DNA from: Piromyces finnis finn
Taxonomy: Eukaryota > Fungi > Neocallimastigomycota
Length of the DNA stretch: 64,000 bases
Assembly: GCA_002104945.1 (NCBI GenBank)
Contig: MCFH01000043.1
Span: forward strand, 124,001-188,000
Direction: 5' to 3'
Shown piece by piece: positions 1 through 64,000 of this stretch; position 1 is the first letter of the stretch, and every line of letters starts with the position of its first letter. Under the pieces are notes generated by a model. That model saw only the letters and a list, made by a program, of their open reading frames with translations, made no database searches and had not been told where the DNA came from. Both the position numbers and the translations under genes were made by a program.

Positions 1-2671
1 TCATTGAATAATTAATTCATTAATATTTAATATTAATTATTTATTTTTAATAATTCAATTTAAAACTATTTTTAGTATATACTATTGGGATACTTTCTAT
101 TCTGTTGGTTTTATATGACCAATTAGAATATTTTTTAAAGAAAATACCAAAGTATTGAGAAAATAAATCTTCATATTTTAAAAAAAGAAATTAAGTATAA
201 TATACTCTTTAAGATAGATGAATTAACAACAATGTCCTTTGTTATATTTTTCAACAATTAATATCTAATAAAAAATTTTTTTTAAAAAAACAGTTTTTTT
301 TAATATTAGTTCATTTATAATTTGTATATTAAAATTGAAAAGTTTTATTTTCTATTCATTGAGCACATATTGTTTTTTTATTTTTATTATTATTGTTTCA
401 TATTTTTAGAAAATCTAAATATAATCTGAAGTTTTTTTTTAACAAAAAATATTGTAAATTAGTATAACAATTATTTTCTTTTTTATAGTGTTGAATAATT
501 TTATGCTTGCAATTTGAAAACAAAAAAAAAATCCCTTTTAACAATTATTTCTATCTATTATTAAGGATATCAAACGAAATAAATGTTAAATGAGCCATTT
601 TAATAATTTATAATAAAAATAAAAGAATAATTAAAGATATTATGGTATTAATGTTTTATTAATTATCTTTTATTATAATATATTTTTTTTTTAACAAATT
701 CAACAACCTAACAAGTTCTACTAAATTATTTAAATATTAATATTTTGTAATTTTTGCTTAACTTTTTTTTTTTAATATTTCCAATTTAATATTGTTTAAT
801 TTATTATTAATACATAATTTATACATTAATTGAAAACTTATAAATTTTCTTAATTCACCACCAAAAAAATTAACTTTAAATTTCATTGGCCAGTCAAAAT
901 GTGCTTAAACGCAGATGAAAAAAAATTTTAAAAATTCAAAAATGAATGAATAAATAAATAGTAAAATAAATAAATAACTAAATAAATTAATGAAAAAAAA
1001 TAATATCCCAAATAAAATTGATATTATTTAAATTTAATTAAAAATATTTTATTTAATTTCTCTCTCTTTTTTTATTTGTCTTTATTTTTTATGGTCAGTT
1101 TTTTACCATTCATTTTAAGGTATCTAGGAAAAACTGTTTTAGTAATTTTTTGATAAATTTTTTTTATTAATTAAAAGGTCATACTTAATTAAATAAAGAA
1201 AAAAAAAATTCATCTTAAAAAATTTTAAATTTTTTAAAAAAAAATAGAGCAAAATGTTTAGGTAAAAAAAAAAAAAAAACTATATAAAATTTATACCATA
1301 CAAAAACCCAATGCAACTACAAAAATTCTATTCATAGCCTTTAAAAGTCCATTTTTACTATTTAATTTTTAGTTTCTTTTCTCCTTTTATTTTGAACTCT
1401 TTTTTTTTAAAAAAAAACTTGTTATATTAAGATTAAACCAAATGACACTAATTTGCTATTTCAATATTGGCATTTTTTATTATTAATAATAAAGTTTATA
1501 TATTAATTTACAATTTATCATATATTATATATATTACAATTGAATTTCAAATGTGGAAAAATAACTTTTTAAATTGTGGAATATTGAATTAAATGGATTT
1601 ATTATTTTATATATGAGTAAAAGTATTTATACCATATATTATTATAAAATAAATAATTTTGATTTGATTATCAAAAAATAAATTGTTTATATATGATATA
1701 TATTATAATATATTTATGAATATAATATTTGTACTTTATCTACATATTTTATATATATTACATTAATATTCTATTTATATTAAATATATTACATTATTAA
1801 TAAGGTTAATTATTAATAAAAATGATTATTAATAATCATTAAAATAATTAGATAATAAATAGCTAACCTTTTATTAATAATCAACTTAACAATAAATTAA
1901 AGTTTTAAAATAACCCAACCCTTCACATTTAATATAAAAATTTAAAAATTTTTATTATTTATTTATTTATTGATTTATTTACTTATTACTATTTATTTAT
2001 TATTAGTAATATTTATTCATTCATTGATTTACTATTATTAATATTCATTGATTTATTTATTAATAATAATTAATGTTTATCTATTTATTCATTGATTTAT
2101 TTATTAATAATAATTAGTAATATCAAAAATAAAGTTTTATTTTAATTTATTAGATTATTAGTAATTTTTTTATATGTAGCATGATCAACCTTCATTTACC
2201 ATAAAAAAAAAATTTTTTTTTTAAAGTTATATATAGCACTGAATTTCTTTCTTTTTGTTTTTTTATATTTAACTATTTTACCTGAAATGGGCCTATAATA
2301 ATTTATAATATAACTAGAAGAAGACAAACTCGTTTGAGAAAAAAAAAGTGTAATAATTTATTGTGTATTCAATATAATAAATAATCTAACAATTCAATTC
2401 AACTTTATTCAATAAGCAAATTTTAAAAGGGAATTTTAATAAACTTTAGCAATTTTTTTCATTATAATTTATTATATATAAAATTAAACGGATATAATTT
2501 CTTTTTTTTTAATGAATAAAAAGCAATCATTTTTTAATAGAACATATAATATTATTTTTATAATTTTTCATTATAGTATTATTTAAATATATATATGAAT
2601 ATTGCTTTCATTCCTTTTTTTCATATATTAAACACATTGTCACGATTCACTATCATAACTTAATAAGATAA

Positions 2672-5521
2672 ATGAAAGTTTTAATTCAAAATTTTATCAA
2701 CAACAATGAATTTTTTGAATTAAAGTCATATTTATGCTTTAATGATATTACTATCAAACAAGTATATCAAAACTGTTTTGATATACTTACATATTCCATG
2801 CTAAAACCTACCCATCTTGAAATTATATTTTATATTATCAGTAACTATGAAAATGTAAATTATGAAACAAAAGATGGTAATATACCTCTTTTTATAGCAC
2901 TGGAAAAACACCAACTAAAAGTGGCAGCATATTTATTGAAACGAGGAGCCCAAATAAATTTTCGTAATAATCAAGGCGAAACAGTATTACTCTATTTATT
3001 GAAAAAAAAATTATTAAATATAACCTTATTAAATTTTATATTAACAAATGGTATTGATATTAATGCTAAAGATATTAATAATAAATGTTTTTTAGACTAT
3101 GCTCGAGATGAGCGTTTAGTAAAAAGAGTATTTATGTACTATATATTTAATAATGATTTTATATTTAATATGGTCAGTTGTTCAAAGAATCGCTACCCTA
3201 TTTGTAGAAAAACTTTTTGTAAACGTATAAAAGCGGAGATAAAAAAAATTGATATCACCAAATCTATCTATTATTCTGTAGTGGATAATCAACAGTTTAA
3301 CATCCTAAAAATCATTCTTTCCTATGACACACACAATCATACCATAGGAGAAATTTGCGAAAAAAATTTATTAATTACCAAGGTGTCAAGAAATAATCAA
3401 TTGATGATGTTGAAATATTTGGTGGATCGTAATGCTAATATTAATGAAATAGACAAAGATGGAAATTCAGCTCTTATTATTGCTTGTAAAAATAGTGCCA
3501 AGGAAACAATTGACTATTTAATAAAACACGGTGTAGATATCTATCATAAAAATAATGAAGGATGGAATGCTTTGATGATTGCTTCCTATAATGGTTTATT
3601 AGAAACGGTACAAAATTTAGTAGAGGGAGGCCTTTCGGTCCACGAAAAAAATTTGATGGGTAGTGATGCCTTGATATATGCTGCAAGTCAAGGTCATCTT
3701 TCTGTTATACAATATTTACTAGAGAAAGGTGCCTGGATTCATTCTCGTAATCAAGATGGTTTCACACCATTATTAATGGCTGTAAAGCATGGATTTGATA
3801 AAGTAGTAAAATATTTAGTAAAACACGGTGCTGATATCGATGATCAAAGTAGTACTAAAACTACAGCAGTTAGTTTAGCAATTCAAAAGAACTATCGTTC
3901 TATTTGTGAATATTTAGTGGAAAAGGGGGCTAAGCTAAATGTTAAGGATAAAGATGGTTATTCAGAAATTGCATTAGCAATTTATCATGGTTATACCGAT
4001 ATTGTAGAATTGTTGATTCAGCATGGTGTCAATATACATGAACATAATGATAATAATTGTACCCTTTTACATATGGCTACTTGTCGTTGTCGTTTATCAA
4101 TATTGAAATTACTTATAGATTCAGGTGCTGATATTAATGCCAAGAATAATGAAGGTAATAATGCCCTTTTAATTGCTTGTGTAAAGGGTTCCCTTCCCAT
4201 TATACAATATTTAGTAGAAATGGGCGCTACTATTAATGTTATCAATGAAGAACACTATACCCCATTACTAATAGCTGCCCAAAACGGACATATGGATGTC
4301 ATGAAATATTTGGTTGAGAAGGGAGCCGATATGACCGTCGTGAATAAATTTGGATTTTCTCCTCTGACCATTTCAGCACTAAAAGGTCGAGTTACATTTA
4401 TCAAATATTTGATTGAACATGGCGCTAATGTTAACAATATTGGTCGAAATGGATACACTACTCTTATGATGAGCTGCATTAATGGTGATTTAAATGTCAT
4501 AAAAACACTTGTTGAAAGTGGAGCTGACCTCTCCATTCGAAATTGCAAAGGAGAAACTGTCCTTCATTGTGCCTGTACAATAAATGACGACCCAGCCATG
4601 GTTGAATACCTTATCCAACAAGGAGCTGAGGTTAATGCCAAAAATCAAGATGGTAACACACCTCTTCATTTAGCATCTCAACATGGTCTCAAGGAAGTAG
4701 TGAAAGTTTTAATTCGTTATCATGCAGATTTAGATGCTTTGAATAAATGTTTCTGTACACCGCTTTGTAATGCTATTATTACAAAGGGTTATTCAATTGT
4801 ACAATATTTTATATGGGAATGTAATGTCAATATCAACATTCAAAATAAGTACGGTTGGACACCGCTTATGATGGCTATTTGTAAAGATTCATTTTCCATT
4901 GTTAAACTTTTGGTAGAATATGGAAGTCAAGTGAATGATATTAATCATGAAGGATGGTCACCTGTAACCTTATCTGCTTCTAAAGGTTTCACTGAGATTA
5001 CAAAATATTTAGTAGAGCAAGGAGCTCACCTAGACTCTAAAAATCTTCAGGGAAATACAGCTCTTCATTTTGCATGTGTCGATGGTAATGAACTATTAAT
5101 ACACTACTTGGTAGAACATGGCGCTGATATCAATGAAAAGAACCAAGATGGTACTACACCTTTGATGGCTTCTATTCAAAATGGGCATGTTCGATCTGCT
5201 CGGTATCTTATTGATCACGGAGCATCTATAAGAGAAAAAAATAATGATGGATTTAATGCTTTGATGATGGCCGTTGATAAAAATTATTTAGATATAGTAG
5301 AAATGCTAGTTAAACGTGGAGTTAACGTTAATGAGGTTAGTAATAGTAGTTGTACAGCCTTATTGATAGCTTCCTCTAAGGGTTATATAGAAATGGTTCA
5401 ATATTTAGTCTGCCATGGAGCAGATCTTCATCATCGTTGTGAAAATGGATGGGATGCATTGACTTTTGCCTACAAAAATAATTATATCTCTATCATTCAT
5501 TATTTATCCATGTATATCTAA
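2672..5521 (+). CDS. Intronless ankyrin-repeat protein (949 aa, ~24 repeats)
   Basis: Single ORF with recurring 33-aa units of the G-x-T/S-P/A-L-x-x-A...LVEHGADIN type (e.g. GNTPLHLASQHGLKEVVKVLIRYHADLD). N-terminal ~220 aa aligns with the next two ORFs. Confidence 0.95.
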   Translation: MKVLIQNFINNNEFFELKSYLCFNDITIKQVYQNCFDILTYSMLKPTHLEIIFYIISNYENVNYETKDGNIPLFIALEKHQLKVAAYLLKRGAQINFRNNQGETVLLYLLKKKLLNITLLNFILTNGIDINAKDINNKCFLDYARDERLVKRVFMYYIFNNDFIFNMVSCSKNRYPICRKTFCKRIKAEIKKIDITKSIYYSVVDNQQFNILKIILSYDTHNHTIGEICEKNLLITKVSRNNQLMMLKYLVDRNANINEIDKDGNSALIIACKNSAKETIDYLIKHGVDIYHKNNEGWNALMIASYNGLLETVQNLVEGGLSVHEKNLMGSDALIYAASQGHLSVIQYLLEKGAWIHSRNQDGFTPLLMAVKHGFDKVVKYLVKHGADIDDQSSTKTTAVSLAIQKNYRSICEYLVEKGAKLNVKDKDGYSEIALAIYHGYTDIVELLIQHGVNIHEHNDNNCTLLHMATCRCRLSILKLLIDSGADINAKNNEGNNALLIACVKGSLPIIQYLVEMGATINVINEEHYTPLLIAAQNGHMDVMKYLVEKGADMTVVNKFGFSPLTISALKGRVTFIKYLIEHGANVNNIGRNGYTTLMMSCINGDLNVIKTLVESGADLSIRNCKGETVLHCACTINDDPAMVEYLIQQGAEVNAKNQDGNTPLHLASQHGLKEVVKVLIRYHADLDALNKCFCTPLCNAIITKGYSIVQYFIWECNVNINIQNKYGWTPLMMAICKDSFSIVKLLVEYGSQVNDINHEGWSPVTLSASKGFTEITKYLVEQGAHLDSKNLQGNTALHFACVDGNELLIHYLVEHGADINEKNQDGTTPLMASIQNGHVRSARYLIDHGASIREKNNDGFNALMMAVDKNYLDIVEMLVKRGVNVNEVSNSSCTALLIASSKGYIEMVQYLVCHGADLHHRCENGWDALTFAYKNNYISIIHYLSMYI

Positions 5522-5802
5522 AGCTAAACAAAAAGTAGATCATATTATTGACAAACGTAGGATCACTTTTTTTTTTTTTTTTTATTCTTCATTAATTATT
5601 TATTTTTTTTAATATATCTCTAAAGTATTAAATTTCAATATATATATTCTTCTATTTGACACTCTATATTTCTAATTTTATAAATTTTATTTTTCTTTTT
5701 TTTTTTTTTAAAATTTATATATATTATAAAAGTGCAATTTATTAAATCACTTTAAAAATTACAATTTAATTTAAAAGAAAAGTAGAGGGGGAAAAAAGTA
5801 TC

Positions 5803-5842
<40 letters not shown>

Positions 5843-6291
5843 TTTTATTATTTACATATATATAGAGAATACATTATAGATTATTATTACAATGAATTAA
5901 TTTTTATTGTGTTCTTTTTTATTGTACTATTATACTAAAAAAAATTAATCTTTTTATTTTTATATTTATAAATTCCATTTATATACCCAAAATATTATAA
6001 AAAATAAACTTTATATACATTAAGGAAATTATTAATTTAATCCTAATTATAAATACATAAATAATATAGTTGAAAAAAATGTATAATGTGTATTTAATAA
6101 GTTTTCTAATAAAATAGAAAACATTTCATATTAATAGAGTTTTTTTTTCTCATTGATAACGACATGTTTAATAAAAGTCAAATGCAATCATTATATTACT
6201 CTATTACTCTATCCATTTTATACATTTTATGGAGGTGATTAGTAATGACATTATTTCATTATTTCTATTGATATTGATAGTTTTTTTATAC

Positions 6292-6475
<184 letters not shown>

Positions 6476-6818
6476 TAATATTATTTTCTTCCATTTTTCC
6501 GCAGAAAAAATTCAATTTTTTTTTTTTTTAATTTGTGTCACTTTAAAATGAAGGTGATGGAAAAAAAAAAATTAAGAAATTTTTAAATTAAAAATAATAT
6601 AAATAAGAATGATAAAAAAAATTTTTTTTTTCTTTATTACCATTAAAAATAAAAAATTAAAAAAATTAAAATTTAAATTAAAAAAAAAAAAAAAAAAAAA
6701 AAGAAGCATTTAGAATATTACATATTAAATAATTATTCATTAACATTATCATACTATATCATTTATAAATATATATATATTTTTATAAAAATAGCTTGAT
6801 AAACGTATAATTTATTAT

Positions 6819-9077
6819 ATGAGTCATAAGCAATTATTAAAAAAATTACTTCTACAAAATAATGAACAGGAAATAAAAACATATTATATATTTAATAATA
6901 TCAAGGTAGAGAACATCAATGATACCACTTTTGACCTACTTATTTTTGCATTAGATCATAATGCATCTGATAATATCATTCTATTTCTTATTAATCAATA
7001 TACCCATTGTGACTATGAAACTCTAGATAAACAAATACCTATTTATGTTGCTTTAGCTCATAATCGTTTTGAAATTGCAGAAGCACTTCTTCATAGACAA
7101 GCTAATATTAACCGTAAAAATAGTAATGGAGATAACCTCTTAATATACCTTTGTAAAGAAGGTAAACTAAATCGTCGTAATTTATCCTTTGCTCTTCATC
7201 ATCATATTGATATTAATGCAAAAGATAATGTTGGTAAAAAAATTTTATATTATTTAATTCATGGTGAGGCTGTTTCATTGGTAAAAATGTTATTGAAATA
7301 TTATATATTTGATACCCCATTTATTCTTCAACTCCTTCAATATCATCGTTATCAAAAAGGACTTTCTGATCAGGAACTTTGTCATATCCTTCATCAAGAA
7401 ACTCAAAAATTAGATATTTCACAGTCTCTTTATTTTTCCGCTATCAAAAATGGTAATTTAGATATCATACAACAACTTTATATTAACGATGGCCATGCTC
7501 ATTTTTATGCTCCAATACCTTCTCTTCAATTAACGCCTTCTTTAACTCCTGTTCCATCTCTTGATACTAGTTTTAATTCACCTGATTTTAGAAATTTATT
7601 ATTTCATTCATCTAATAATGAAGACGCTAATACTAATAATACAGCACTTTCAATAACTAACAATTCTACGCCTTCCTCATCATCTCATAACCCTTTAAAA
7701 ACCAATACACTTTTATCAGCAAAAACTTCTGATAACATAAATTCTTCTTTTTCTAAACCTTCCAATAATATTATAGATCGATATAATATGCTTATTCATG
7801 CTACAATTAAAAATGAATTAACTTTGGTAAACTATTTTTTAGAATTAGGAGCCAATGTAAATAAAAGTAATAATAAAGGTGATACGGCACTAATAATTGC
7901 AGCATTTAAAGGTCAATTGGATATCGTTCAAACGTTGTTAAAACATGGTGCTAATGTTAATCATTGTAATAAACGTCATTATACAGCTCTTATTTATGCT
8001 TCTGAAAAGAATCACCATAAAGTGGTAAAAGAACTAATTAACTATGGAGCTTTTGTTAATCAACAAGAAAATGAAGGTAATACTCCTTTGATTTTAGCTT
8101 CTTTATTTGGCTGTAAAGATACAATTCGTATTTTACTTCAAGAAGAACGTTGTGATTCTTATCTTAAAAATCATCATGGTTGGTCTGCAGTTCATTGTGC
8201 TACTCTTTACCATCACCTTAATACCCTAAAAATCTTATTAGACCATGGTCTTCCAATTGATGATTGCAATGAAAAAGGCATAACCCCATTACACATTGCA
8301 GCAGAGAATGGTGATAAAAATATAGTGCAGTATTTAGTGACGCGAGGAGCCCGCTTAGATTACCCTAGTCAAACTGGTAAAACGGCATTAATGTTTGCTG
8401 CTGCAAGAGGTCATTTAGATACTGTAAAATGTTTAATAGACGGTGGTGCGCAATTAGAAGCCATTGAAATGAAAGGTGATACTCCTTTAATGCATGCTGT
8501 CTATAATGGTCACGTGGAAGTAGTTCGCTATTTAACTGAAAAAGGTGCCAATCTTCACATTCGTAATAGTAAGATGGCTACTCCTGCAATCTATGCAACT
8601 TCTAATCAGCATCCAGAAGTATTAAAATATCTATTAGAGCATAATGCTGATGTTGAGAGTCAGGATAGTTTAGGATGGAGTCCTCTTTTGATTGCGACCA
8701 AGTCTGGTCACTTAGAAATGATGCAACTTTTAATAGAGTATCATGTACCTTTAGATCAACAAGAAACAGGTGGGCGAACTGCTTTAATGATTGCAGTGGA
8801 AAATTATCATTTAGATTCTATGAAATTGTTGGTTAAAGCTGGCAGTCCGCTTACTCAACAAGATAAACATGGTCATACTGCTTGTGTGATTGCAGCATTC
8901 CATGATTATCAAGATATTGTGAAATATTTATTAGAAGAAGGTTATCGTCAAGAAGAAGATCTACTTTTAAGAAAACAAGAAATTTTAAATTCCTATGTTA
9001 TTGCGATGTTTAAGGAAAATACATCGGTAATACGATATCTTTCTTATTATATTACTAAACATAAGATTAGATATTAA
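6819..9077 (+). CDS. Intronless ankyrin-repeat protein (752 aa, ~12 C-terminal repeats), paralog of 2672-5521
   Basis: Ankyrin units such as GITPLHIAAENGDKNIVQYLVTRGA and GDTPLMHAVYNGHVEVVRYLTEKGA. Shares the N-terminal module; carries a Ser/Asn/Pro-rich insert. Confidence 0.95.
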   Translation: MSHKQLLKKLLLQNNEQEIKTYYIFNNIKVENINDTTFDLLIFALDHNASDNIILFLINQYTHCDYETLDKQIPIYVALAHNRFEIAEALLHRQANINRKNSNGDNLLIYLCKEGKLNRRNLSFALHHHIDINAKDNVGKKILYYLIHGEAVSLVKMLLKYYIFDTPFILQLLQYHRYQKGLSDQELCHILHQETQKLDISQSLYFSAIKNGNLDIIQQLYINDGHAHFYAPIPSLQLTPSLTPVPSLDTSFNSPDFRNLLFHSSNNEDANTNNTALSITNNSTPSSSSHNPLKTNTLLSAKTSDNINSSFSKPSNNIIDRYNMLIHATIKNELTLVNYFLELGANVNKSNNKGDTALIIAAFKGQLDIVQTLLKHGANVNHCNKRHYTALIYASEKNHHKVVKELINYGAFVNQQENEGNTPLILASLFGCKDTIRILLQEERCDSYLKNHHGWSAVHCATLYHHLNTLKILLDHGLPIDDCNEKGITPLHIAAENGDKNIVQYLVTRGARLDYPSQTGKTALMFAAARGHLDTVKCLIDGGAQLEAIEMKGDTPLMHAVYNGHVEVVRYLTEKGANLHIRNSKMATPAIYATSNQHPEVLKYLLEHNADVESQDSLGWSPLLIATKSGHLEMMQLLIEYHVPLDQQETGGRTALMIAVENYHLDSMKLLVKAGSPLTQQDKHGHTACVIAAFHDYQDIVKYLLEEGYRQEEDLLLRKQEILNSYVIAMFKENTSVIRYLSYYITKHKIRY

Positions 9078-56165: not shown

Positions 56166-59100
56166 ATGTCTTTTCAAGAAAACAGTGATTACAAGAAATC
56201 AATTGTTGAAATTCCAGTTAATAAAATTGTATTAGCTGATTCATTATCTTCAGATGATAAGTACAATGAAAGTTCTGAAAAAATTAATAAAATTGTTAAA
56301 AAGTTAAATGTTGTTGAAAATGAAATTATGAGTGAATCTGATGTTGGTTATGATGAAGATGAAGAATTTAATGATGAAGAATTTGAATTATATTTAAATA
56401 AGTTAAAGAAAGAAAATCCAGGTGAATATGAATTAATTATTAACGAACTTCAAAAGGATGATCTTAACAGTCCAAATGAAAGAACCATCATTACTTATCA
56501 AATGGCATCTCCAGTTGAAATTAAAGGTGAACGTCAATCTGGTATGATGTCTCCAGTTGAAAATATTGCTTCAAATGAACAACTTGATATGAAAAATGTA
56601 CCATTAATTAAAAAGCGCTATCGTATTTCTAAGAATAAGAAAGAAAATTTGTTAAATCATTCTGATAAAAAAGATACTATCTTAGCTGAATCTAGCCACC
56701 TATTATCTCCACCAGCTTCACCATTCCCACAAACTGAAAAGAAAGATCAAACTGCTAATTTGGGTCAATTTATAATTGACACTGAAAATGGAGGTAATGA
56801 TATCCAAATAGATTCCAGCGAGCAAATTGATGAAGAACTTTTACAACAAATTCAAAATCTTGAACTTGAAAATGGTAGTCAAAGTTTCATTACTACTACC
56901 ACTACCACTACTAGTTCTGAAATTCCAGAATTAGAAGGTAATAACGAAGTTGTTATTAAGAAGCGTATTCCAATTATTACCAAGGATGGTAAGAGGGCAT
57001 TTGTTGAAGTTATTGAAAAAACTGTTACTACTGTTACTAGTGAAGTAGATGATGAACCAGTTGAATATGTTGAAGAAATAATAGAAGAAGAAGAAGAAGA
57101 AGATGACGATGAATTACTTCAAAAATCCAATTTTTTCAAAGAAATTTCTAAAAGTATTGATAGTAAATTAAATACATCTTCTACTAAAATTGTTAAGGAA
57201 TCTCAAAGCGAAATAAATATTCCTGAACCAAAAGTTGAAGTGTTTGAAGAATTAGTTGAAATTCCAAATGATGATCCAACAAAGGAACCATTAATTAAAA
57301 AAATCACTAGAACCATAACTACTAAGATTAATCCAGAAACTGGTGATGAAGAAATTACTGAAGAAGTTGTTGAAGAAATTGAAGAAACCATTGAAGAAAC
57401 TGATGATGAATCAAGTGATAATGATAATATTGAGGTTAGAGAAGAAGTTTTTGAAGTTCCATCTGATGACCCAAACCAATCTACTATTATTAAGACTATT
57501 ACTAAGACTTATACCACTAGAATTAATCCTGAAACTGGTGAAGAAGAAATTGTTGAAGAAGAGGATATTATTTCTGATGATGAAAATGCTGAAAATGTCG
57601 AAATCAGAGAAGAAGTTGTTGAGGTTCCATCTGATGATCCAAACCAATCTACAATTATAAAAACCATTACAAAGACTTATGTCACTAGAATTAATTCAGA
57701 AACCGGAGAAGAAGAAATTGTTGAAGAAGATGCATTAGATGGTGATGACAATGTAGAAATTCTTAAAGGAGTTACTGAAGTTTCAAATCAAGAAAAATCA
57801 GTCCAAAGAAAGGTTGTCAAGAAAGTCATGAGATATGTTACCATTATTAATCCAGAAACAGGTAAAGAAGAAGTTGTTGAAGAGATTGTTGAAGAACAAC
57901 CAAATGAAGAAGTTGATGTTGAAGCTAGAGATATTGTTGTTGCTCCACAAGAAAAAGTAGAAATTAAAGAAGAAATTATTGAAGTTCCAATAGAAGGAGC
58001 CACTACTAAGCGAGTTATTAAAAAGATTATTAGATACATTACTAGAATCAATCCAGAAACTGGAAAAGAAGAAGTTGTTGAAGAAATTGTTGAAGAACCA
58101 ATTGAAGATGCTATTAGCGAATTTAGAGAAGAAAATCTTCCATCAGAACATGTAAAGGTTGAAGAAGAAACTCATGAAGTTCCAGTTGAAGGTGCTAATG
58201 AAAATGCTATTGTTCAAACTATCACAAAATCCTATGTTACTAGAATTAATCCAGAAACTGGAGAAGAAGAAATTATTGAAGAAGATGCTATTAGTGATAA
58301 TGGTGATGTTGAAATTATTGAAGAAGTTGTTGAAATTGACGAAGATCAACCAATTCAAAGAAAGCTTGTAAAGAAAATCACTAAATTTATTACTAGAATC
58401 AATCCAGAAACTGGAAAAGAAGAAGTTGTTGAAGAGATTGTTGAAGAACAACCAAATGAAGAAGTTGATGTTGAAGCTAGAGATATTGTTGTTGCTCCAC
58501 AAGAAAAAGTAGAAATTAAAAAAGAAATTATTGAAGTTCCAATAGAAGGAGCCACTACTAAGCGAGTTATTAAAAAGATTATTAGATACATTACTAGAAT
58601 CAATCCAGAAACTGGAAAAGAAGAAGTTGTTGAAGAAATTGTTGAAGAACCAATTGAAGATGCTATTAGCGAATTTAGAGAAGAAAATCTTCCATCAGAA
58701 CATGTAAAGGTTGAAGAAGAAACTCATGAAGTTCCAGTTGAAGGTGCTAATGAAAATGCTATTGTTCAAACTATCACAAAATCCTATGTTACTAGAATTA
58801 ATCCAGAAACTGGAGAAGAAGAAATTATTGAAGAAGATGCTATTAGTGATAATGGTGATGTTGAAATTATTGAAGAAGTTGTTGAAATTGACGAAGATCA
58901 ACCAATTCAAAGAAAGCTTGTAAAGAAAATCACTAAATTTATTACTAGAATCAATCCAGAAACTGGAAAAGAAGAAGTTGTTGAAGAGATTGTTGAAGAA
59001 CAACCAAATGAAGAAGTTGATGTTGAAGCTAGAGATATTGTTGTTGCTCCACAAGAAAAAGTAGAAATTAAAAAAGAAATTATTGAAGTTCCAATAGAAG

Positions 59101-62100
59101 GAGCCACTACTAAGCGAGTTATTAAAAAGGTTATTAGATACATTACTAGAATCAATCCAGAAACTGGAAAAGAAGAAGTTGTTGAAGAAATTGTTGAAGA
59201 ACCAAAAGAAGAAACTATTGAAGAACATCCAGTCATTGAAGTTGTTGAAGAACAGCTTATTGAAGAACAACCAATTGAAATTGTTAAGGAAGTTTCTTAT
59301 GAACCAAAAGAAGAAATTGTTGAAGAAAACGTTAGAGAAGAAATTATTGAAGTTCCTTCCGAAGAATCAGGAAAGAAAAGATTTATTAAGAGAATTATTA
59401 GATATATTACTAGAAAGAACCCAATTACTGGAGAAGAAATTGTAGAAGAAATAGTTAATGAAGAATCAACCGAAGAACAACCAGATGAAGTTGTTGAAGA
59501 AGTTATTTCAGAACCAAAAGAAGAAATAATTGAAGAACAACCAATTGAAGAACAGCAACCAGTTAAAGAAGTTGCTTCAGAACTAAAGGAAGAAATTATT
59601 GAAGAAAATGTTAGAGAAGAAATTATTGAAGTTCCTTCCGAAGAATCAGGAAAGAAAAGATTTATTAAGAGAATTATTAGATACATCACTAGAAAGAACC
59701 CAATTACTGGAGAAGAAATTGTAGAAGAAATTGTTAATGAAGAATCAACCGAAGAACAACCAGATGAAGTTGTTGCTGAACCAAAGGAAGAAAAAATTGA
59801 AAAACAACCAATTGAAGAACAGCAACCAGTTGAAGAAGTTGTTGAAGAAGTTGTTACTGAACCAAAGGAAGAAATAATTGAAGAACAGCAACCAGTTGGA
59901 GAAGTTGTTGAAGAAATTGTTACTGAACCAAAGGAAGAAATAATTGAAGAACAACCAGTTGAAGAACAACCAATAGTAGAAGTTATTAATGAAGTAAATT
60001 ATGAAATAACTGAAGAACAACCAGTTGAAGAAGTTGTTGAAGAAGTTATTTCAGAACCAAAGGAAGAAATTATTGAAGAAAATGTTAGAGAAGAAATTAT
60101 TGAAGTTCCTTCCGAAGAATCAGGAAAGAAAAGATTTATTAAGAGAATTATTAGATACATTACTAGAAAGAATCCAGTTACTGGAGAAGAAATTGTAGAA
60201 GAAATAGTTAATGAAGAATCAACCGAAGAACAACCAGTTGAAGTTGTTGAAGAAGTTATTTCAGAATCAAAAGAAGAAATAATTGAAGAACAACCAATTG
60301 AAGAACAACAACCAGTTGAAGAAGTTGTTACTGAACCAAAGGAAGAAATAATTGAAGAACAACCAGTTGAAGAACAAAAACCAGTTGAAGAAGCTGTTGA
60401 AGAAGTTGTTTCAGAACCAAAGGAAGAAATAATTGAAGAGCAATCAGTTGAAGGACAACAACCAGTTGAAGAAGTTGCTTCAGAGCCAAAGGAAGAAATT
60501 ATTGAAGAAAATGTTAGAGAAGAAATTATTGAAGTTCCTTCCGAAGAATCAGGAAAGAAAAGATTTATTAAGAGAATTATTAGATACATTACTAGAAAGA
60601 ACCCAATTACTGGAGAAGAAATTGTAGAAGAAATAGTTAATGAAGAATCAACCGAAGAACAACCAGTTGAAGTTGTTGAAGAAGTTATTTCAGAATCAAA
60701 AGAAGAAATAATTGAAGAACAACCAATTGAAGAACAGCAACCAGTTGAAGAAGTTGTTACTGAACCAAAGGAAGAAATAATTGAAGAACAACCAGTTGAA
60801 GAACAAAAACCAATTGAAGAAGCTGTTGAAGAAGTTGTTTCAGAACCAAAGGAAGAAATAATTGAAGAGCAATCAGTTGAAGAACAGCAACCAGTTGAAG
60901 AAGTTGTTACTGAACCAAAGGAAGAAATAATTGAAGAACAACCAGTTGAAGAACAAAAACCAGTTGAAGAAGCTGTTGAAGAAGTTGTTTCAGAACCAAA
61001 GGAAGAAATAATTGAAGAGCAATCAGTTGAAGAACAGCAACCAGTTGAAGAAGTTGTTACTGAACCAAAGGAAGAAATAATTGAAGAACAACCAGTTGAA
61101 GAACAAAAACCAGTTGAAGAAGCTGTTGAAGAAGTTGTTTCAGAACCAAAGGAAGAAATAATTGAAGAGCAATCAGTTGAAGGACAACAACCAGTTGAAG
61201 AAGTTGCTTCAGAACCAAAGGAAGAAATTATTGAAGAAAATGTTAGAGAAGAAATTATTGAAGTTCCTTCCGAAGAATCAGGAAAGAAAAGATTTATTAA
61301 GAGAATTATTAGATACATTACTAGAAAGAACCCAATTACTGGAGAAGAAATTGTAGAAGAAATAGTTAATGAAGAATCAACCGAAGAACAACCAGATGAA
61401 GTTGTTGAAGAAGTTATTTCAGAACCAAAAGAAGAAATAATTGAAGAACAACCAATTGAAGAACAGCAACCAGTTGAAGAAGTTGTTACTGAACCAAAGG
61501 AAGAAATAATTGAAGAAAATGTTAAAGAAGAAATTATTGAAGTTCCTTCCGAAGAATCAGGAAAGAAAAGATTTATTAAGAGAATTATTAGATACATTAC
61601 TAGAAAGAATCCAGTTACTGGAGAAGAAATTGTAGAAGAAATTGTTAATGAAGAATCAACCGAAGAACAACCAGTTGAAGTTGTTGAAGATGTTGATTCA
61701 GAACCAAGAGAAGAATCAACTGAAGAACAACCAGTTGAAGAAGTTGTTGAAGAAGTAATTTCAGAACCAAAGGAAGAAATAATTGAAGAACAACCAGTTG
61801 AAAAACAAGAAAAGAAGCCAATATTATATAGGGTATTTAAAAAGAGTAACAGACGTAGAAGAAAGTCAAAGAATCCAATTGAAGAAGGTGTTAAAGAAGT
61901 TGGTTCAGAACCAAAGGAAGAATCAACTGAAGAACAACCAGTTGAAAAAGTTGTTGAAGAAGTTATTTCAGAAACAAATGATGAAAGAATTGAAGAACAA
62001 CCAATTAAAGGTGTTGAAGAAGTTGTTTTAGAACCAAAGGATGAAATAATTGAAGAACTACCAGTTGAAGAACAAAAACCAGTTGTTGAAGTTGTTGAAG

Positions 62101-64000
62101 AAGTTGTTACTGAACCAAAGGAAGAAATAATTGAAGAAAAACAAGTTGAAGAACAAAAACCAGTTGAAGAAGCTGTTGAAGAAGTTGTTTCAGAACCAAA
62201 GGAAGAAATAATTGAAGAGCAATCAGTTGAAGGACAACAACCAGTTGAAGAAGTTGCTTCAGAACCAAAGGAAGAAATTATTGAAGAAAATGTTAGAGAA
62301 GAAATTATTGAAGTTCCTTCCGAAGAATCAGGAAAGAAAAGATTTATTAAGGGAATTATTAGATACATTACTAGAAAGAATCCAGTTACTGGAGAAGAAA
62401 TTGTAGAAGAAATTGTTAATGAAGAATCAATCGAAGAACAACCAGTTGAAGTTGTTGAAGATGTTGATTCAGAACCAAGAGAAGAATCAACTGAAGAACA
62501 ACCAGTTGAAGAAGTTGTTGAAGAAGTAATTTCAGAACCAAAGGAAGAAATAATTGAAGAACAACCAGTTGAAAAACAAGAAAAGAAGCCAATATTATAT
62601 AGGGTATTTAAAAAGAGTAACAGACGTAGAAGAAAGTCAAAGAATCCAATTGAAGAAGGTGTTAAAGAAGTTGGTTCAGAACCAAAGGAAGAATCAACTG
62701 AAGAACAACCAGTTGAAGAAGTTGTTGAAGAAGTTATTTCAGAAACAAATGATGAAAGAATTGAAGAACAACCAATTAAAGGTGTTGAAGAAGTTGTTTT
62801 AGAACCAAAGAATGAAATAATTGAAGAACTACCAGTTGAAGAACAAAAACCAGTTGTTGAAGTTGTTGAAGAAGTTGTTACTGAACCAAAGGAAGAAATA
62901 ATTGAAGAACAACCAATTGAAGAACAGCAACCAGTTGAAGAACAGCAACCAGTTGAAGAAGTTGTTACTGAACCAAAGGAAGAAATAATTGAACAACAAG
63001 TTGAAGAACAAAAACCAGTTGTTGAAATTGTTGAAGAAGTTGTTTCAGAACAAAATGATGAAATAACTGAAAAACAACCAGTTGAAGAAGTTGTTGAAGA
63101 AATTATTTCAGAACCAAAGGAAGAAATTATTGAAGAAAATGTTAGAGAAGAAATTATTGAAGTTCCTTACGAAGAATCAGGAAAGAAAAGATTTATTAAG
63201 AGAATTATTAGATACATTACTAGAAAGAACCCAATTACTGGAGAAGAAATTGTAGAAGAAATAGTTAATGAAGAATCAACCGAAGAACAACCAGTTGAAG
63301 TTGTTGAAGAAGTTGATTCTGAACCAAGAGACGAATCAACTGAAGAACAACCAGTTGAAGAAGTTGTTGAAGAAGTTGTTACTGAACCAAAGGAAGAAAT
63401 AATTGAAGAACAACCAGTTGAAAAACAACCAATAGTAGAAGTTGTTGAAGAAGTTGTTTCAGAACCAAAGGAAGAAATAATTGAAGAGCAATCAGTTGAA
63501 GAACAGCAACCAGTTGAAGAAGTTGTTACTGAACCAAAGGAAGAAATAATTGAAGAACAACCAGTTGAAGAACAAAAACCAGTTGAAGAAGCTGTTGAAG
63601 AAGTTGTTTCAGAACCAAAGGAAGAAATAATTGAAGAGCAATCAGTTGAAGGACAACAACCAGTTGAAGAAGTTGCTTCAGAACCAAAGGAAGAAATTAT
63701 TGAAGAAAATGTTAGAGAAGAAATTATTGAAGTTCCTTACGAAGAATCAGGAAAGAAAAGATTTATTAAGAGAATTATTAGATACATTACTAGAAAGAAT
63801 CCAGTTACTGGAGAAGAAATTGTAGAAGAAATTGTTAATGAAGAATCAACCGAAGAACAACCAGTTGAAGTTGTTGAAGAAGTTGATTCTGAACCAAGAG
63901 ACGAATCAACTGAAGAACAACCAGTTGAAGAAGTTGTTGAAGAAGTTGTTACTGAACCAAAGGAAGAAATAATTGAAGAACAACCAGTTGAAGAAGCTGT
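56166..64000 (+). CDS. Giant acidic Glu/Val/Ile/Pro-rich repeat protein, >2600 aa, open at the window end
   Basis: ATG at 56166 (MSFQENSDYKKSIVEIP...). The same frame holds at 57000, 57960, 60000, 61800 and 63960, with no in-frame stop seen. About 20 copies of (K/R)xIxRxITRxNPxTGxEExVEE separated by EPKEEIIEEQPVEE spacers. No signal peptide. Confidence 0.9.
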   Translation, partial: MSFQENSDYKKSIVEIPVNKIVLADSLSSDDKYNESSEKINKIVKKLNVVENEIMSESDVGYDEDEEFNDEEFELYLNKLKKENPGEYELIINELQKDDLNSPNERTIITYQMASPVEIKGERQSGMMSPVENIASNEQLDMKNVPLIKKRYRISKNKKENLLNHSDKKDTILAESSHLLSPPASPFPQTEKKDQTANLGQFIIDTENGGNDIQIDSSEQIDEELLQQIQNLELENGSQSFITTTTTTTSSEIPELEGNNEVVIKKRIPIITKDGKRAFVEVIEKTVTTVTSEVDDEPVEYVEEIIEEEEEEDDDELLQKSNFFKEISKSIDSKLNTSSTKIVKESQSEINIPEPKVEVFEELVEIPNDDPTKEPLIKKITRTITTKINPETGDEEITEEVVEEIEETIEETDDESSDNDNIEVREEVFEVPSDDPNQSTIIKTITKTYTTRINPETGEEEIVEEEDIISDDENAENVEIREEVVEVPSDDPNQSTIIKTITKTYVTRINSETGEEEIVEEDALDGDDNVEILKGVTEVSNQEKSVQRKVVKKVMRYVTIINPETGKEEVVEEIVEEQPNEEVDVEARDIVVAPQEKVEIKEEIIEVPIEGATTKRVIKKIIRYITRINPETGKEEVVEEIVEEPIEDAISEFREENLPSEHVKVEEETHEVPVEGANENAIVQTITKSYVTRINPETGEEEIIEEDAISDNGDVEIIEEVVEIDEDQPIQRKLVKKITKFITRINPETGKEEVVEEIVEEQPNEEVDVEARDIVVAPQEKVEIKKEIIEVPIEGATTKRVIKKIIRYITRINPETGKEEVVEEIVEEPIEDAISEFREENLPSEHVKVEEETHEVPVEGANENAIVQTITKSYVTRINPETGEEEIIEEDAISDNGDVEIIEEVVEIDEDQPIQRKLVKKITKFITRINPETGKEEVVEEIVEEQPNEEVDVEARDIVVAPQEKVEIKKEIIEVPIEGATTKRVIKKVIRYITRINPETGKEEVVEEIVEEPKEETIEEHPVIEVVEEQLIEEQPIEIVKEVSYEPKEEIVEENVREEIIEVPSEESGKKRFIKRIIRYITRKNPITGEEIVEEIVNEESTEEQPDEVVEEVISEPKEEIIEEQPIEEQQPVKEVASELKEEIIEENVREEIIEVPSEESGKKRFIKRIIRYITRKNPITGEEIVEEIVNEESTEEQPDEVVAEPKEEKIEKQPIEEQQPVEEVVEEVVTEPKEEIIEEQQPVGEVVEEIVTEPKEEIIEEQPVEEQPIVEVINEVNYEITEEQPVEEVVEEVISEPKEEIIEENVREEIIEVPSEESGKKRFIKRIIRYITRKNPVTGEEIVEEIVNEESTEEQPVEVVEEVISESKEEIIEEQPIEEQQPVEEVVTEPKEEIIEEQPVEEQKPVEEAVEEVVSEPKEEIIEEQSVEGQQPVEEVASEPKEEIIEENVREEIIEVPSEESGKKRFIKRIIRYITRKNPITGEEIVEEIVNEESTEEQPVEVVEEVISESKEEIIEEQPIEEQQPVEEVVTEPKEEIIEEQPVEEQKPIEEAVEEVVSEPKEEIIEEQSVEEQQPVEEVVTEPKEEIIEEQPVEEQKPVEEAVEEVVSEPKEEIIEEQSVEEQQPVEEVVTEPKEEIIEEQPVEEQKPVEEAVEEVVSEPKEEIIEEQSVEGQQPVEEVASEPKEEIIEENVREEIIEVPSEESGKKRFIKRIIRYITRKNPITGEEIVEEIVNEESTEEQPDEVVEEVISEPKEEIIEEQPIEEQQPVEEVVTEPKEEIIEENVKEEIIEVPSEESGKKRFIKRIIRYITRKNPVTGEEIVEEIVNEESTEEQPVEVVEDVDSEPREESTEEQPVEEVVEEVISEPKEEIIEEQPVEKQEKKPILYRVFKKSNRRRRKSKNPIEEGVKEVGSEPKEESTEEQPVEKVVEEVISETNDERIEEQPIKGVEEVVLEPKDEIIEELPVEEQKPVVEVVEEVVTEPKEEIIEEKQVEEQKPVEEAVEEVVSEPKEEIIEEQSVEGQQPVEEVASEPKEEIIEENVREEIIEVPSEESGKKRFIKGIIRYITRKNPVTGEEIVEEIVNEESIEEQPVEVVEDVDSEPREESTEEQPVEEVVEEVISEPKEEIIEEQPVEKQEKKPILYRVFKKSNRRRRKSKNPIEEGVKEVGSEPKEESTEEQPVEEVVEEVISETNDERIEEQPIKGVEEVVLEPKNEIIEELPVEEQKPVVEVVEEVVTEPKEEIIEEQPIEEQQPVEEQQPVEEVVTEPKEEIIEQQVEEQKPVVEIVEEVVSEQNDEITEKQPVEEVVEEIISEPKEEIIEENVREEIIEVPYEESGKKRFIKRIIRYITRKNPITGEEIVEEIVNEESTEEQPVEVVEEVDSEPRDESTEEQPVEEVVEEVVTEPKEEIIEEQPVEKQPIVEVVEEVVSEPKEEIIEEQSVEEQQPVEEVVTEPKEEIIEEQPVEEQKPVEEAVEEVVSEPKEEIIEEQSVEGQQPVEEVASEPKEEIIEENVREEIIEVPYEESGKKRFIKRIIRYITRKNPVTGEEIVEEIVNEESTEEQPVEVVEEVDSEPRDESTEEQPVEEVVEEVVTEPKEEIIEEQPVEEA
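57850..59200 (+). repeat. 552-bp (184-codon) coding tandem repeat, ~2.4 near-identical copies
   Basis: CAAATGAAGAAGTTGATGTTGAAGCTAGAG recurs at 57901, 58453 and 59005. Shadow ORF pairs 58143/58695 and 58159/58711 also differ by 552. Confidence 0.9.
59250..64000 (+). repeat. Mosaic coding repeat array with a 771-bp higher-order duplication
   Basis: Nine copies of EEIIEVP(S/Y)EESGKKRFIK(R/G)IIRYITRKNP(I/V)TGEEIVEEIVNEES. Identical shadow ORFs at 61783 and 62554 differ by 771 bp. Confidence 0.85.

Follow-up and report, generated by a model that had tools for sequence, protein, structure and literature searches.

What kind of protein is encoded at the end of this stretch of the Piromyces finnis genome, and where in the cell would it sit? 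The window (the whole 64,000-nucleotide stretch, C171:124001-188000 in a genome of 56.46 Mb and 232 contigs) ends inside a very long open reading frame (ORF) whose product is acidic and repetitive. The preliminary description, made from the window's sequence, saw more than 2,600 codons with no intron and no stop. All 2,611 codons inside the window are indeed open, and when the contiguous downstream sequence is joined, the ORF continues to 8,836 codons. We see an even chance that the product is a cytosolic "beads-on-a-string" protein of anaerobic gut fungi, about 1 MDa in mass, that is fixed to a membrane by its C terminus and serves as a long elastic tether, spacer, or brush. We are much less confident about any specific membrane or partner for the tether.

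The ORF is single and intronless. It begins with the ATG at window position 56166 (+ strand) and ends with a stop codon at the equivalent of window positions 82,674-82,676 (G000:C171:206676). It spans 26.5 kb (G000:C171:180166-206676), which is 3.4 times the part visible in the window. There are in-frame stops upstream of the ATG, and the start aligns with the N terminus of an orthologous contig protein, P0016. In a genome with a guanine-plus-cytosine (GC) content of 13-30%, a stop-free run of 8,836 codons rules out chance. (GC content is 13-24% in the background and 28-33% in the region of the repeat gene. This region is also purine-rich on the + strand, with a GC skew of +0.16 to +0.33 and an adenine-thymine, or AT, skew of +0.18 to +0.38.) The product would have a mass of 1,023.5 kDa, an isoelectric point of 4.11, and a net charge of about -1,845. 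It is 29% E (about 2,600 glutamates), 14.5% V, 12.6% I, 8% P, 7% K, and 6% Q, with 9 cysteines and no tryptophan. The only deposited model that we found for the locus, by an exact-sequence look-up with a C-terminal piece of the ORF, is ORX44844.1 (hypothetical protein BCR36DRAFT_300646, 538 amino acids). It begins at an internal methionine and covers only residues 8299-8836.

The protein has three parts with clearly different compositions: a head (residues 1-370), a medial region (371-8290), and a tail (8291-8836). The head had been described as a unique N terminus of about 370 residues with SP motifs, and this stands: it carries 5 of the 7 SP/TP sites of the whole protein, and it has no match in Pfam and no sequence match in the Protein Data Bank (PDB). 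Several head motifs are kept in P0016 (VEIPVNK, EEFE..LN.LK..NP.EYELI, TYQMASPV, LLSPPASPFPQ, and KKRIPIITKDGK).

The medial region (about 7,900 residues) contains 45 copies of a module of about 41-50 residues. Exactly 20 copies lie inside the window, where about 20 copies of a module of about 45 residues had been reported. The consensus is xEEIIEVPSxExxKKxxIKxIIRYITRINPxTGExEIVEE, with EEIIEVP...KKRFIKRIIRYITRxNPxTGEEIVEE as the typical form. Modules 1-11 include a 184-residue super-repeat of three modules, in two full copies; after the 11th module, the in-window copies are spaced 88-283 residues apart. We modeled the fold with AlphaFold2, using an alignment of 38 distinct copies from the giant ORF and two paralogues. 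The predicted structure is a three-stranded antiparallel beta-meander, with a mean predicted local distance difference test score (pLDDT) of 83.4 (74-83 across all five models). The first predicted strand is acidic and ends with EVP, the second is basic, and the third is acidic; an NPETG turn joins the second and third. Their mean net charges are -3.2, +6.3, and -5.3, and the modules are about neutral overall. In a charge-hydropathy plot, the modules fall on the folded side. The three-stranded sheet and the acidic/basic/acidic pattern that the preliminary description proposed both emerge from this analysis, and the modules are predicted to be folded rather than disordered.

We then compared the predicted fold to known structures. 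Foldseek found generic three-stranded sheets only (best E-value 0.09), and the best VIA-align hits, with Z of up to 5.3, were also generic three-stranded sheets (a subunit of the human cytomegalovirus pentamer, COMM domains, and levivirus coat proteins). A PDB sequence search with the module profile gave nothing meaningful, and neither the module region nor the tail had a usable match in the ESM Atlas. A loose likeness to G5 rods had been suggested. The G5-E regions of the staphylococcal proteins SasG and Aap do have flat three-stranded sheets and a "V.Y...NP.TGE"-like hairpin, as the module does, and SasG/Aap chains were among the top Foldseek rows, but these matches are not significant (20-26% identity, E-value about 0.1, TM-score 0.2-0.46). 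With VIA-align, the G5 domain of an IgA1 protease scored Z 3.8, which is within the noise of generic three-stranded sheets, and the Pfam family for G5 (PF07501) has no match. Unlike our protein, SasG and Aap are bacterial and extracellular and consist of contiguous units without long acidic linkers. Because neither Pfam nor the PDB gives a match and the fold matches are generic, we do not assign the module to the G5 family.

Between the modules are linkers of 10-869 residues (in the whole protein). They are rich in E, V, I, P, Q, and K, close to the E/P/V/K/Q-rich spacers described earlier, with a net charge of -0.283 per residue and a proline about every 9-10 residues. The linkers are assembled from in-frame units of 21, 23, 27, and 50 residues (for example, EPKEEIIEEQPVEEQKPVEEAVEEVVS), and the tandem-repeat periods in the DNA (63, 69, 81, 150, 279, 429, and 474 nt) are all multiples of three. 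By the same charge-hydropathy measure, the linkers lie deep in the disordered range. The region also contains a polybasic linear motif, LYRVFKKSNRRRRKSKNP, in seven copies, and a helix-like insert of about 50 residues (...LIPSVIEMIINEV..., NEYFELIPSVIEMIINEVRFDNN...NILNRLLKQFNI), in two copies at residues 3,691 and 4,025, past the end of the window.

Is the protein free in the cell or attached to a membrane? The preliminary description favored a cytoskeletal spring or scaffold and proposed a search for C-terminal domains downstream of the window. What we found there is a tail with a basic low-complexity stretch, six hydrophobic segments (residues 8508-8785), and a conserved end, ...IRQNTIHY (the protein terminates ...SRIHEIRQNTIHY). 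The last five hydrophobic segments are conserved; across five homologues, 43 columns do not vary. Because of the six C-terminal hydrophobic segments, we predict that the protein is membrane-anchored. The spring or scaffold may survive, but it would not be a free cytoskeletal one. Pfam searches with the last 900 residues, the last 500 residues, and six tail homologues gave only sub-threshold noise.

The tail is also found in other gut fungi. In the Neocallimastix-type sequences P0003/L030, P0006, and P0029, it lies behind modules and acidic repeats, and the order of module, polybasic YRV motif, and tail is the same as in P. finnis. In Neocallimastix lanati, the tail homologue is a stand-alone gene of about 332 residues (KAG4105389.1; JACVTC010000009.1, or L029, 10001-11188), which again ends with IRQNTIHY, and there is no same-strand ORF of at least 150 residues in the 10 kb upstream. 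The stand-alone gene implies that the anchor is a separable domain. A very long cytosolic chain with an anchor at its extreme C terminus is also seen in nesprins (KASH proteins) and giantin. Unlike the P. finnis protein, which has six hydrophobic segments in its tail, those proteins are built from spectrin repeats or coiled coils and have a single transmembrane segment. KASH proteins have one C-terminal transmembrane segment followed by a luminal peptide of about 30 residues with a PPPX-like ending. We rejected membership in the KASH family, given the six segments, the different C-terminal end, and the lack of any Pfam match in the last 900 residues.

We have several reasons to place the 8,500 N-terminal residues in the cytosol, as the preliminary description's term "intracellular" implied. 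First, a hydropathy scan of the whole protein found no hydrophobic segment before residue 8506, so there is no signal peptide, as had been noted. Second, it is implausible that so long a chain would be transferred across a membrane. Third, there is a sister family with a predicted prenylation signal. A paralogue on another contig (G000:C158, about 154,500-168,300, minus strand; L020-L022) has about 26 modules in units of about 378 bp. It shares the modules, spacers, polybasic motif, and helical insert with the giant ORF, in addition to a head of its own (MLGNNLNEGE...) and "mirror" hairpins (TTTEVVIDPETGKKKTVTKKVTRKV). (The helical insert also occurs in orthologues of this paralogue, once in P0010 and twice in P0027.) The paralogue ends with a polybasic stretch and ...SKNKDCIIM followed by a stop, which has the form of a CaaX box (cysteine at position -4, two aliphatic residues, and a final residue X). 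Four independent contig proteins (P0005, P0010, P0020, and P0027) also end with CIIM, and these too contain the modules, the polybasic motif, and the helical insert. A polybasic CaaX sequence is a farnesylation signal, and prenylation marks proteins on the cytosolic face of membranes. TGA stops and frame changes split the C158 paralogue into ORFs of 955, 267, 330, 1,987, and 509 residues, with a poly-N run at the junction of the last two, so the array is either a decaying gene or a product of assembly indel errors. The NCBI model, ORX47291.1, covers only its first 854 residues.

How widespread is this family? We scanned 1.84 billion representative proteins exhaustively with HMMER, and the last 736 residues (three modules and the tail) matched only 22 of them. 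The named ones are all "hypothetical proteins" from P. finnis, Neocallimastix californiae, N. lanati, and N. sp. 'constans', and the others are unnamed contigs from JGI, ENA, and Logan. The first 1,000 residues matched only three JGI contig proteins, in a search whose candidate list was saturated by E-rich words. Pfam searches with residues 1-2611, the head, and the tandem-module region were equally uninformative; the sub-threshold hits of all the Pfam searches, those with the tail included, were PT-TG, YqzE, and Anthrone_oxy (E-value 0.005, against a 27-bit cut-off). In the literature, we found nothing on the locus tag, the accession, or the JGI sample numbers, and no publication dealing with giant or glutamate-rich gut-fungal proteins. 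A match to a characterized family would have spoken against novelty, but we found no Pfam family, solved structure, or informative annotation for this protein.

The module also occurs in other contexts. A third module-bearing ORF (G000:C68:393,570-396,311; L023:3570-6311, +) is a 914-residue open frame that combines two full modules with PKEVTVPEPKEAPKTESKKSKKESVTSQ repeats, EVIEEIVEIPY strands, and C-terminal TRTIVIKNKNGDVVETKTLEG hairpins; its contig homologue is P0022. In small proteins of 333-388 residues (P0012, P0018, ORY85882.1 from N. californiae, and many JGI and ENA contigs), 3-4 modules are fused to a conserved helical C-terminal domain (...LRNFIREQPLRLIESIRFEAVTRIIPLINQYEERL...). 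The cluster of P0012 has eight members, and the commonest member alone is found on 10 contigs. There are at least four architectures: giant proteins with a transmembrane anchor, giant proteins with a farnesyl-type anchor (both anchors are predicted), the C68 type, and small proteins with the helical C-terminal domain. The module behaves as a genuine lineage-restricted domain that is confined to Neocallimastigomycota.

We also compared the ORF to its orthologous contig (L028/P0016). The overall nonsynonymous divergence (dN) is 0.30 and the synonymous divergence (dS) is 0.72. For the module cores, dN/dS is 0.26 and the identity is 72%; for the linkers, dN/dS is 0.72 and the identity is 44%. A side observation is that the contig has an in-frame TAA at about 2850-2860 of L028, where the strand EEIV-E-VP needs GAA. 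The gene call ends at 897 residues because of this codon, which could be either a read error or a real stop.

If the protein is a membrane-fixed tether, then the linkers would repel themselves and work as entropic springs, up to about 3 μm in contour length (at 0.36 nm per residue), and the folded beads would be mechanically resistant units or interaction units. The head and the polybasic motifs could serve as docking sites. The whole protein could span the distance from a membrane to a partner bound by the head, or it could be a brush-like membrane skeleton. Several points weigh against this proposal. The fold of the module was predicted in a single AlphaFold2 run, with internal repeats and paralogues as the alignment, and a three-stranded sheet that stands alone and lacks a hydrophobic core may depend on a partner. 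The disorder of the linkers is predicted from their composition alone, and the linkers evolve at a near-neutral rate (although a between-species alignment of repeats may not be strictly orthologous). The transmembrane segments are called by hydropathy alone, and the AlphaFold2 model of the tail, from six sequences, is unreliable (pLDDT 57). Finally, about 15% of the ORF lies within exact repeats of at least 300 nt (the longest is 892 nt). These point to recent tandem amplification or gene conversion, and they imply that the assembled number of copies may be inaccurate.

Giant repeat-built elastic or scaffold proteins are already known as a kind; here, one would be made from an unnamed domain. 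A functional analogy is the PEVK region of titin (also of Sallimus and TTN-1); the preliminary description had pointed to titin and Sallimus. Both have segments rich in P, E, V, and K (with I in our case) that are probably disordered and are built from units of about 27-28 residues, and in both, a megadalton chain interleaves such segments with small folded units rich in beta structure, as expected of an entropic spring. Unlike titin, the P. finnis protein is far more acidic, is predicted to be membrane-anchored rather than sarcomeric, and has no sequence homology to it. There is no Ig, Fn3, or other Pfam domain with an E-value of 1 or less in residues 1-2611 or in the last 900 residues. So the likeness to PEVK holds for composition, with the linkers on the disordered side, and fails for family membership, since Ig and Fn3 domains are missing and neither Pfam nor the PDB gives a match. 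AT-rich genomes quite often encode giant acidic repeat proteins. Pf332 and Pf11-1 of Plasmodium falciparum, which also has an AT-rich genome, contain arrays of (P)EE[LV]VEEV[IV] of several kb and associate with membranes or the membrane skeleton. Unlike them, the P. finnis protein has interspersed NPxTG modules and a different anchor, and no homology to Pf332 or Pf11-1 was detected in the search of 1.84 billion proteins.

We then considered other explanations. The first is a planar membrane skeleton like an epiplast, in which the beta modules and the V/I/E-rich stretches of many molecules would associate sideways into a viscoelastic sheet. We consider this unlikely, though it has several things in its favor. 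The motif of the module's first strand, EEI[IV]E[IV]P (35 copies; for example, EEIVEVP), resembles the alveolin repeat EKIVEVP, a string that does occur in papers on alveolins. Lipid or transmembrane anchors are predicted in the family. Also, among the best structural neighbors of the module are COMM domains and levivirus coat proteins, whose sheets pair with a partner. In composition and layout, the nearest known class is the epiplastins (alveolins, articulins, and epiplasmins), which belong to the membrane skeleton of alveolates, euglenids, glaucophytes, and cryptophytes (Goodenough et al. 2018, PMC6212826). Like them, the P. finnis protein has a head/medial/tail layout, a medial region dominated by V, E, I, K, Q, and P (81.5% in total) from which G, A, and L are nearly excluded, beta-strand and coil character, and a membrane association, which in our case is predicted (PMC6212826).

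Several of the numbers do not fit an epiplastin, however. The medial domains of epiplastins are 25 +/- 7% V, 9 +/- 4% I, 16 +/- 5% E, 9 +/- 4% K, and 7 +/- 3% R, with G and A nearly excluded; their net charge is -9 +/- 13; and acid-base dyads are strongly enriched (PMC6212826). In the medial region of our protein, 15.6% V, 12.8% I, 6.8% K, 2.8% R, 1.1% G, 0.5% A, and 0.9% L agree roughly with this pattern. E, at 31.3%, is about twice as abundant, and the net charge is about -1,800; both are far out of range. Acid-base dyads are depleted, at 4.0 per 100 residues versus 6.22 +/- 0.23 in 50 shuffled sequences. The protein also has discrete conserved modules of 50 residues, which epiplastins lack, has only two VPV motifs rather than VPV repeats, and is 10-50 times larger than epiplastins. 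The Pfam family IMCp (PF12314) has no match in the whole genome at an E-value of 10 or less. We therefore rejected membership in the epiplastins and alveolins on account of the dyads and the lack of an IMCp match; what is left of the earlier comparison to articulins and epiplasmins is the shared subset of residues. With so extreme a negative charge, many molecules would also be hard to pack densely side by side. Gut fungi are not known to build an epiplast. Epiplastin-like genes were reported to be absent from early-branching fungi (PMC6212826).

A quite improbable alternative is that the gene is a runaway in-frame expansion of minisatellites, favored by an AT-rich setting. Most of its length would then serve little or no specific purpose, and the gene would perhaps be expressed weakly or not at all. 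The long exact repeats, the tandem periods of 63 to 474 nt, and the near-neutral linkers would all be expected under this explanation. The C158 array is broken, and the deposited gene model includes only the last 538 residues. Also, Neocallimastigomycota have the most low-complexity regions per genome among fungal phyla (PMC11878562). But an array without function would not be expected to keep 26.5 kb free of even one stop or frameshift, or to maintain the low dN/dS of the module cores. Conservation between Piromyces and the Neocallimastix-type sequences extends to the head, the modules, the polybasic motif, the helical insert, and the anchor. Furthermore, the typical low-complexity residue of Neocallimastigomycota is asparagine (PMC11878562), and the medial region contains only 2% asparagine, unlike the default low-complexity sequence of this lineage.

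It is similarly doubtful that the basic segment of the module, KKRFIKRIIRYITRK, is a basic amphipathic helix with calmodulin, acidic lipids, or tubulin tails as its ligand; the protein would in that case be a multivalent docking platform. In the common copy, hydrophobic residues are spaced i, i+1, i+4, i+5, i+7, and i+8, and the strong positive charge of the segment would suit such a helix. But in the AlphaFold2 model the segment is a strand (pLDDT around 85). In the divergent, oldest-looking N-terminal copies (such as STIIKTITKTYVTRINPETG), the K and R of the central strand are largely replaced by T, I, V, and Y, while the flanking acidic strands and the NPxTG turn are retained. Because these residues favor beta structure, the segment is more probably a strand than a basic helix.

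With its roughly 2,600 glutamates and its large negative charge, the protein could instead be a polyanion store (a buffer for Ca2+, Mg2+, or polyamines, or a scaffold for a condensate on an organelle membrane), but this would leave the folded conserved modules, the head, and the polybasic motifs unexplained, and we found no known cation-binding motif and no Pfam match, so we consider it very unlikely. We give almost no credence to an extracellular cellulosome scaffoldin of the ScaA type: the size, repeats, and possible membrane anchor fit the published description (over 500 kDa, repeat-rich, and sometimes membrane-anchored; PMC8262932), but the P. finnis ScaA fragment has Cys-rich GYY...C...C repeats (PMC8262932, Table S1), and our protein has no GYY and only 9 cysteines in 8,836 residues, lacks tryptophan and a signal peptide, and has a paralogue that ends with a CaaX box, which contradicts this identity.

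If the membrane-fixed tether is real, it would be among the largest non-enzymatic proteins of fungi, and its modules would represent a domain family confined to Neocallimastigomycota. Since the public model covers only the tail, proteome-based studies of these biotechnologically important fungi would miss most of the protein. The module, with three strands and a simple charge pattern, would be attractive for studies of protein mechanics and for design. The protein would also offer a molecular handle on the almost unknown membrane-cytoskeleton organization of the rhizoids and zoospores of gut fungi, and it would extend an "epiplastin-like" composition to an early-branching fungal lineage from which the class was reported to be absent. 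A more speculative view, which we think is probably wrong as a whole, is that an elastic, membrane-anchored skeleton or tether of megadalton size arose independently in gut fungi, convergent with the PEVK region of titin and with the epiplasts of protists. The module would then be a "charge-zipper" domain, its basic strand clamped by the two acidic ones: tension could unzip it and expose a polybasic amphipathic segment, which would make the protein mechanosensitive in the cortex of rhizoids or zoospores, in cells that force their way into plant tissue.

Features of the giant ORF within the window, in window coordinates
Feature	Position	Strand	Remarks
ORF, part inside the window	56166..64000	+	First 2,611 of 8,836 codons; stop-free translation, continues past the window
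Head, residues 1-370	56166..57275	+	Ordinary composition; motifs conserved in P0016
Modules 1-11, back to back, residues 371-1015	57276..59210	+	Pitch of 51-67 residues
Module copy used for folding	57942..58106	+	Predicted strands at residues 5-16, 23-36, and 43-53; pLDDT 83.4
Modules 12-20, KKRFIKRIIRYITRKNP[IV]TG type	59211..64000	+	Polyanionic linkers of 47-242 residues between copies
Polybasic linear motif LYRVFKKSNRRRRKSKNP, copy 1 of 7	61824..61877	+	Conserved in orthologues and in the CaaX paralogue
Polybasic motif LYRVFKKSNRRRRKSKNP, copy 2 of 7	62595..62648	+	Motif match

Finally, P. finnis has other very long acidic ORFs, at C167 about 1,311,232-1,321,287 (3,352 residues, minus strand) and C155 385,945-395,010 (1,733 and 917 residues). 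They contain almost no NPxTG modules, but at the DNA level they are 64-66% identical to the linker repeats (EEQPVEEQQPVAEEVKPTEE type). Judging from these sequences, P. finnis seems to have several PEVK-like megagenes.

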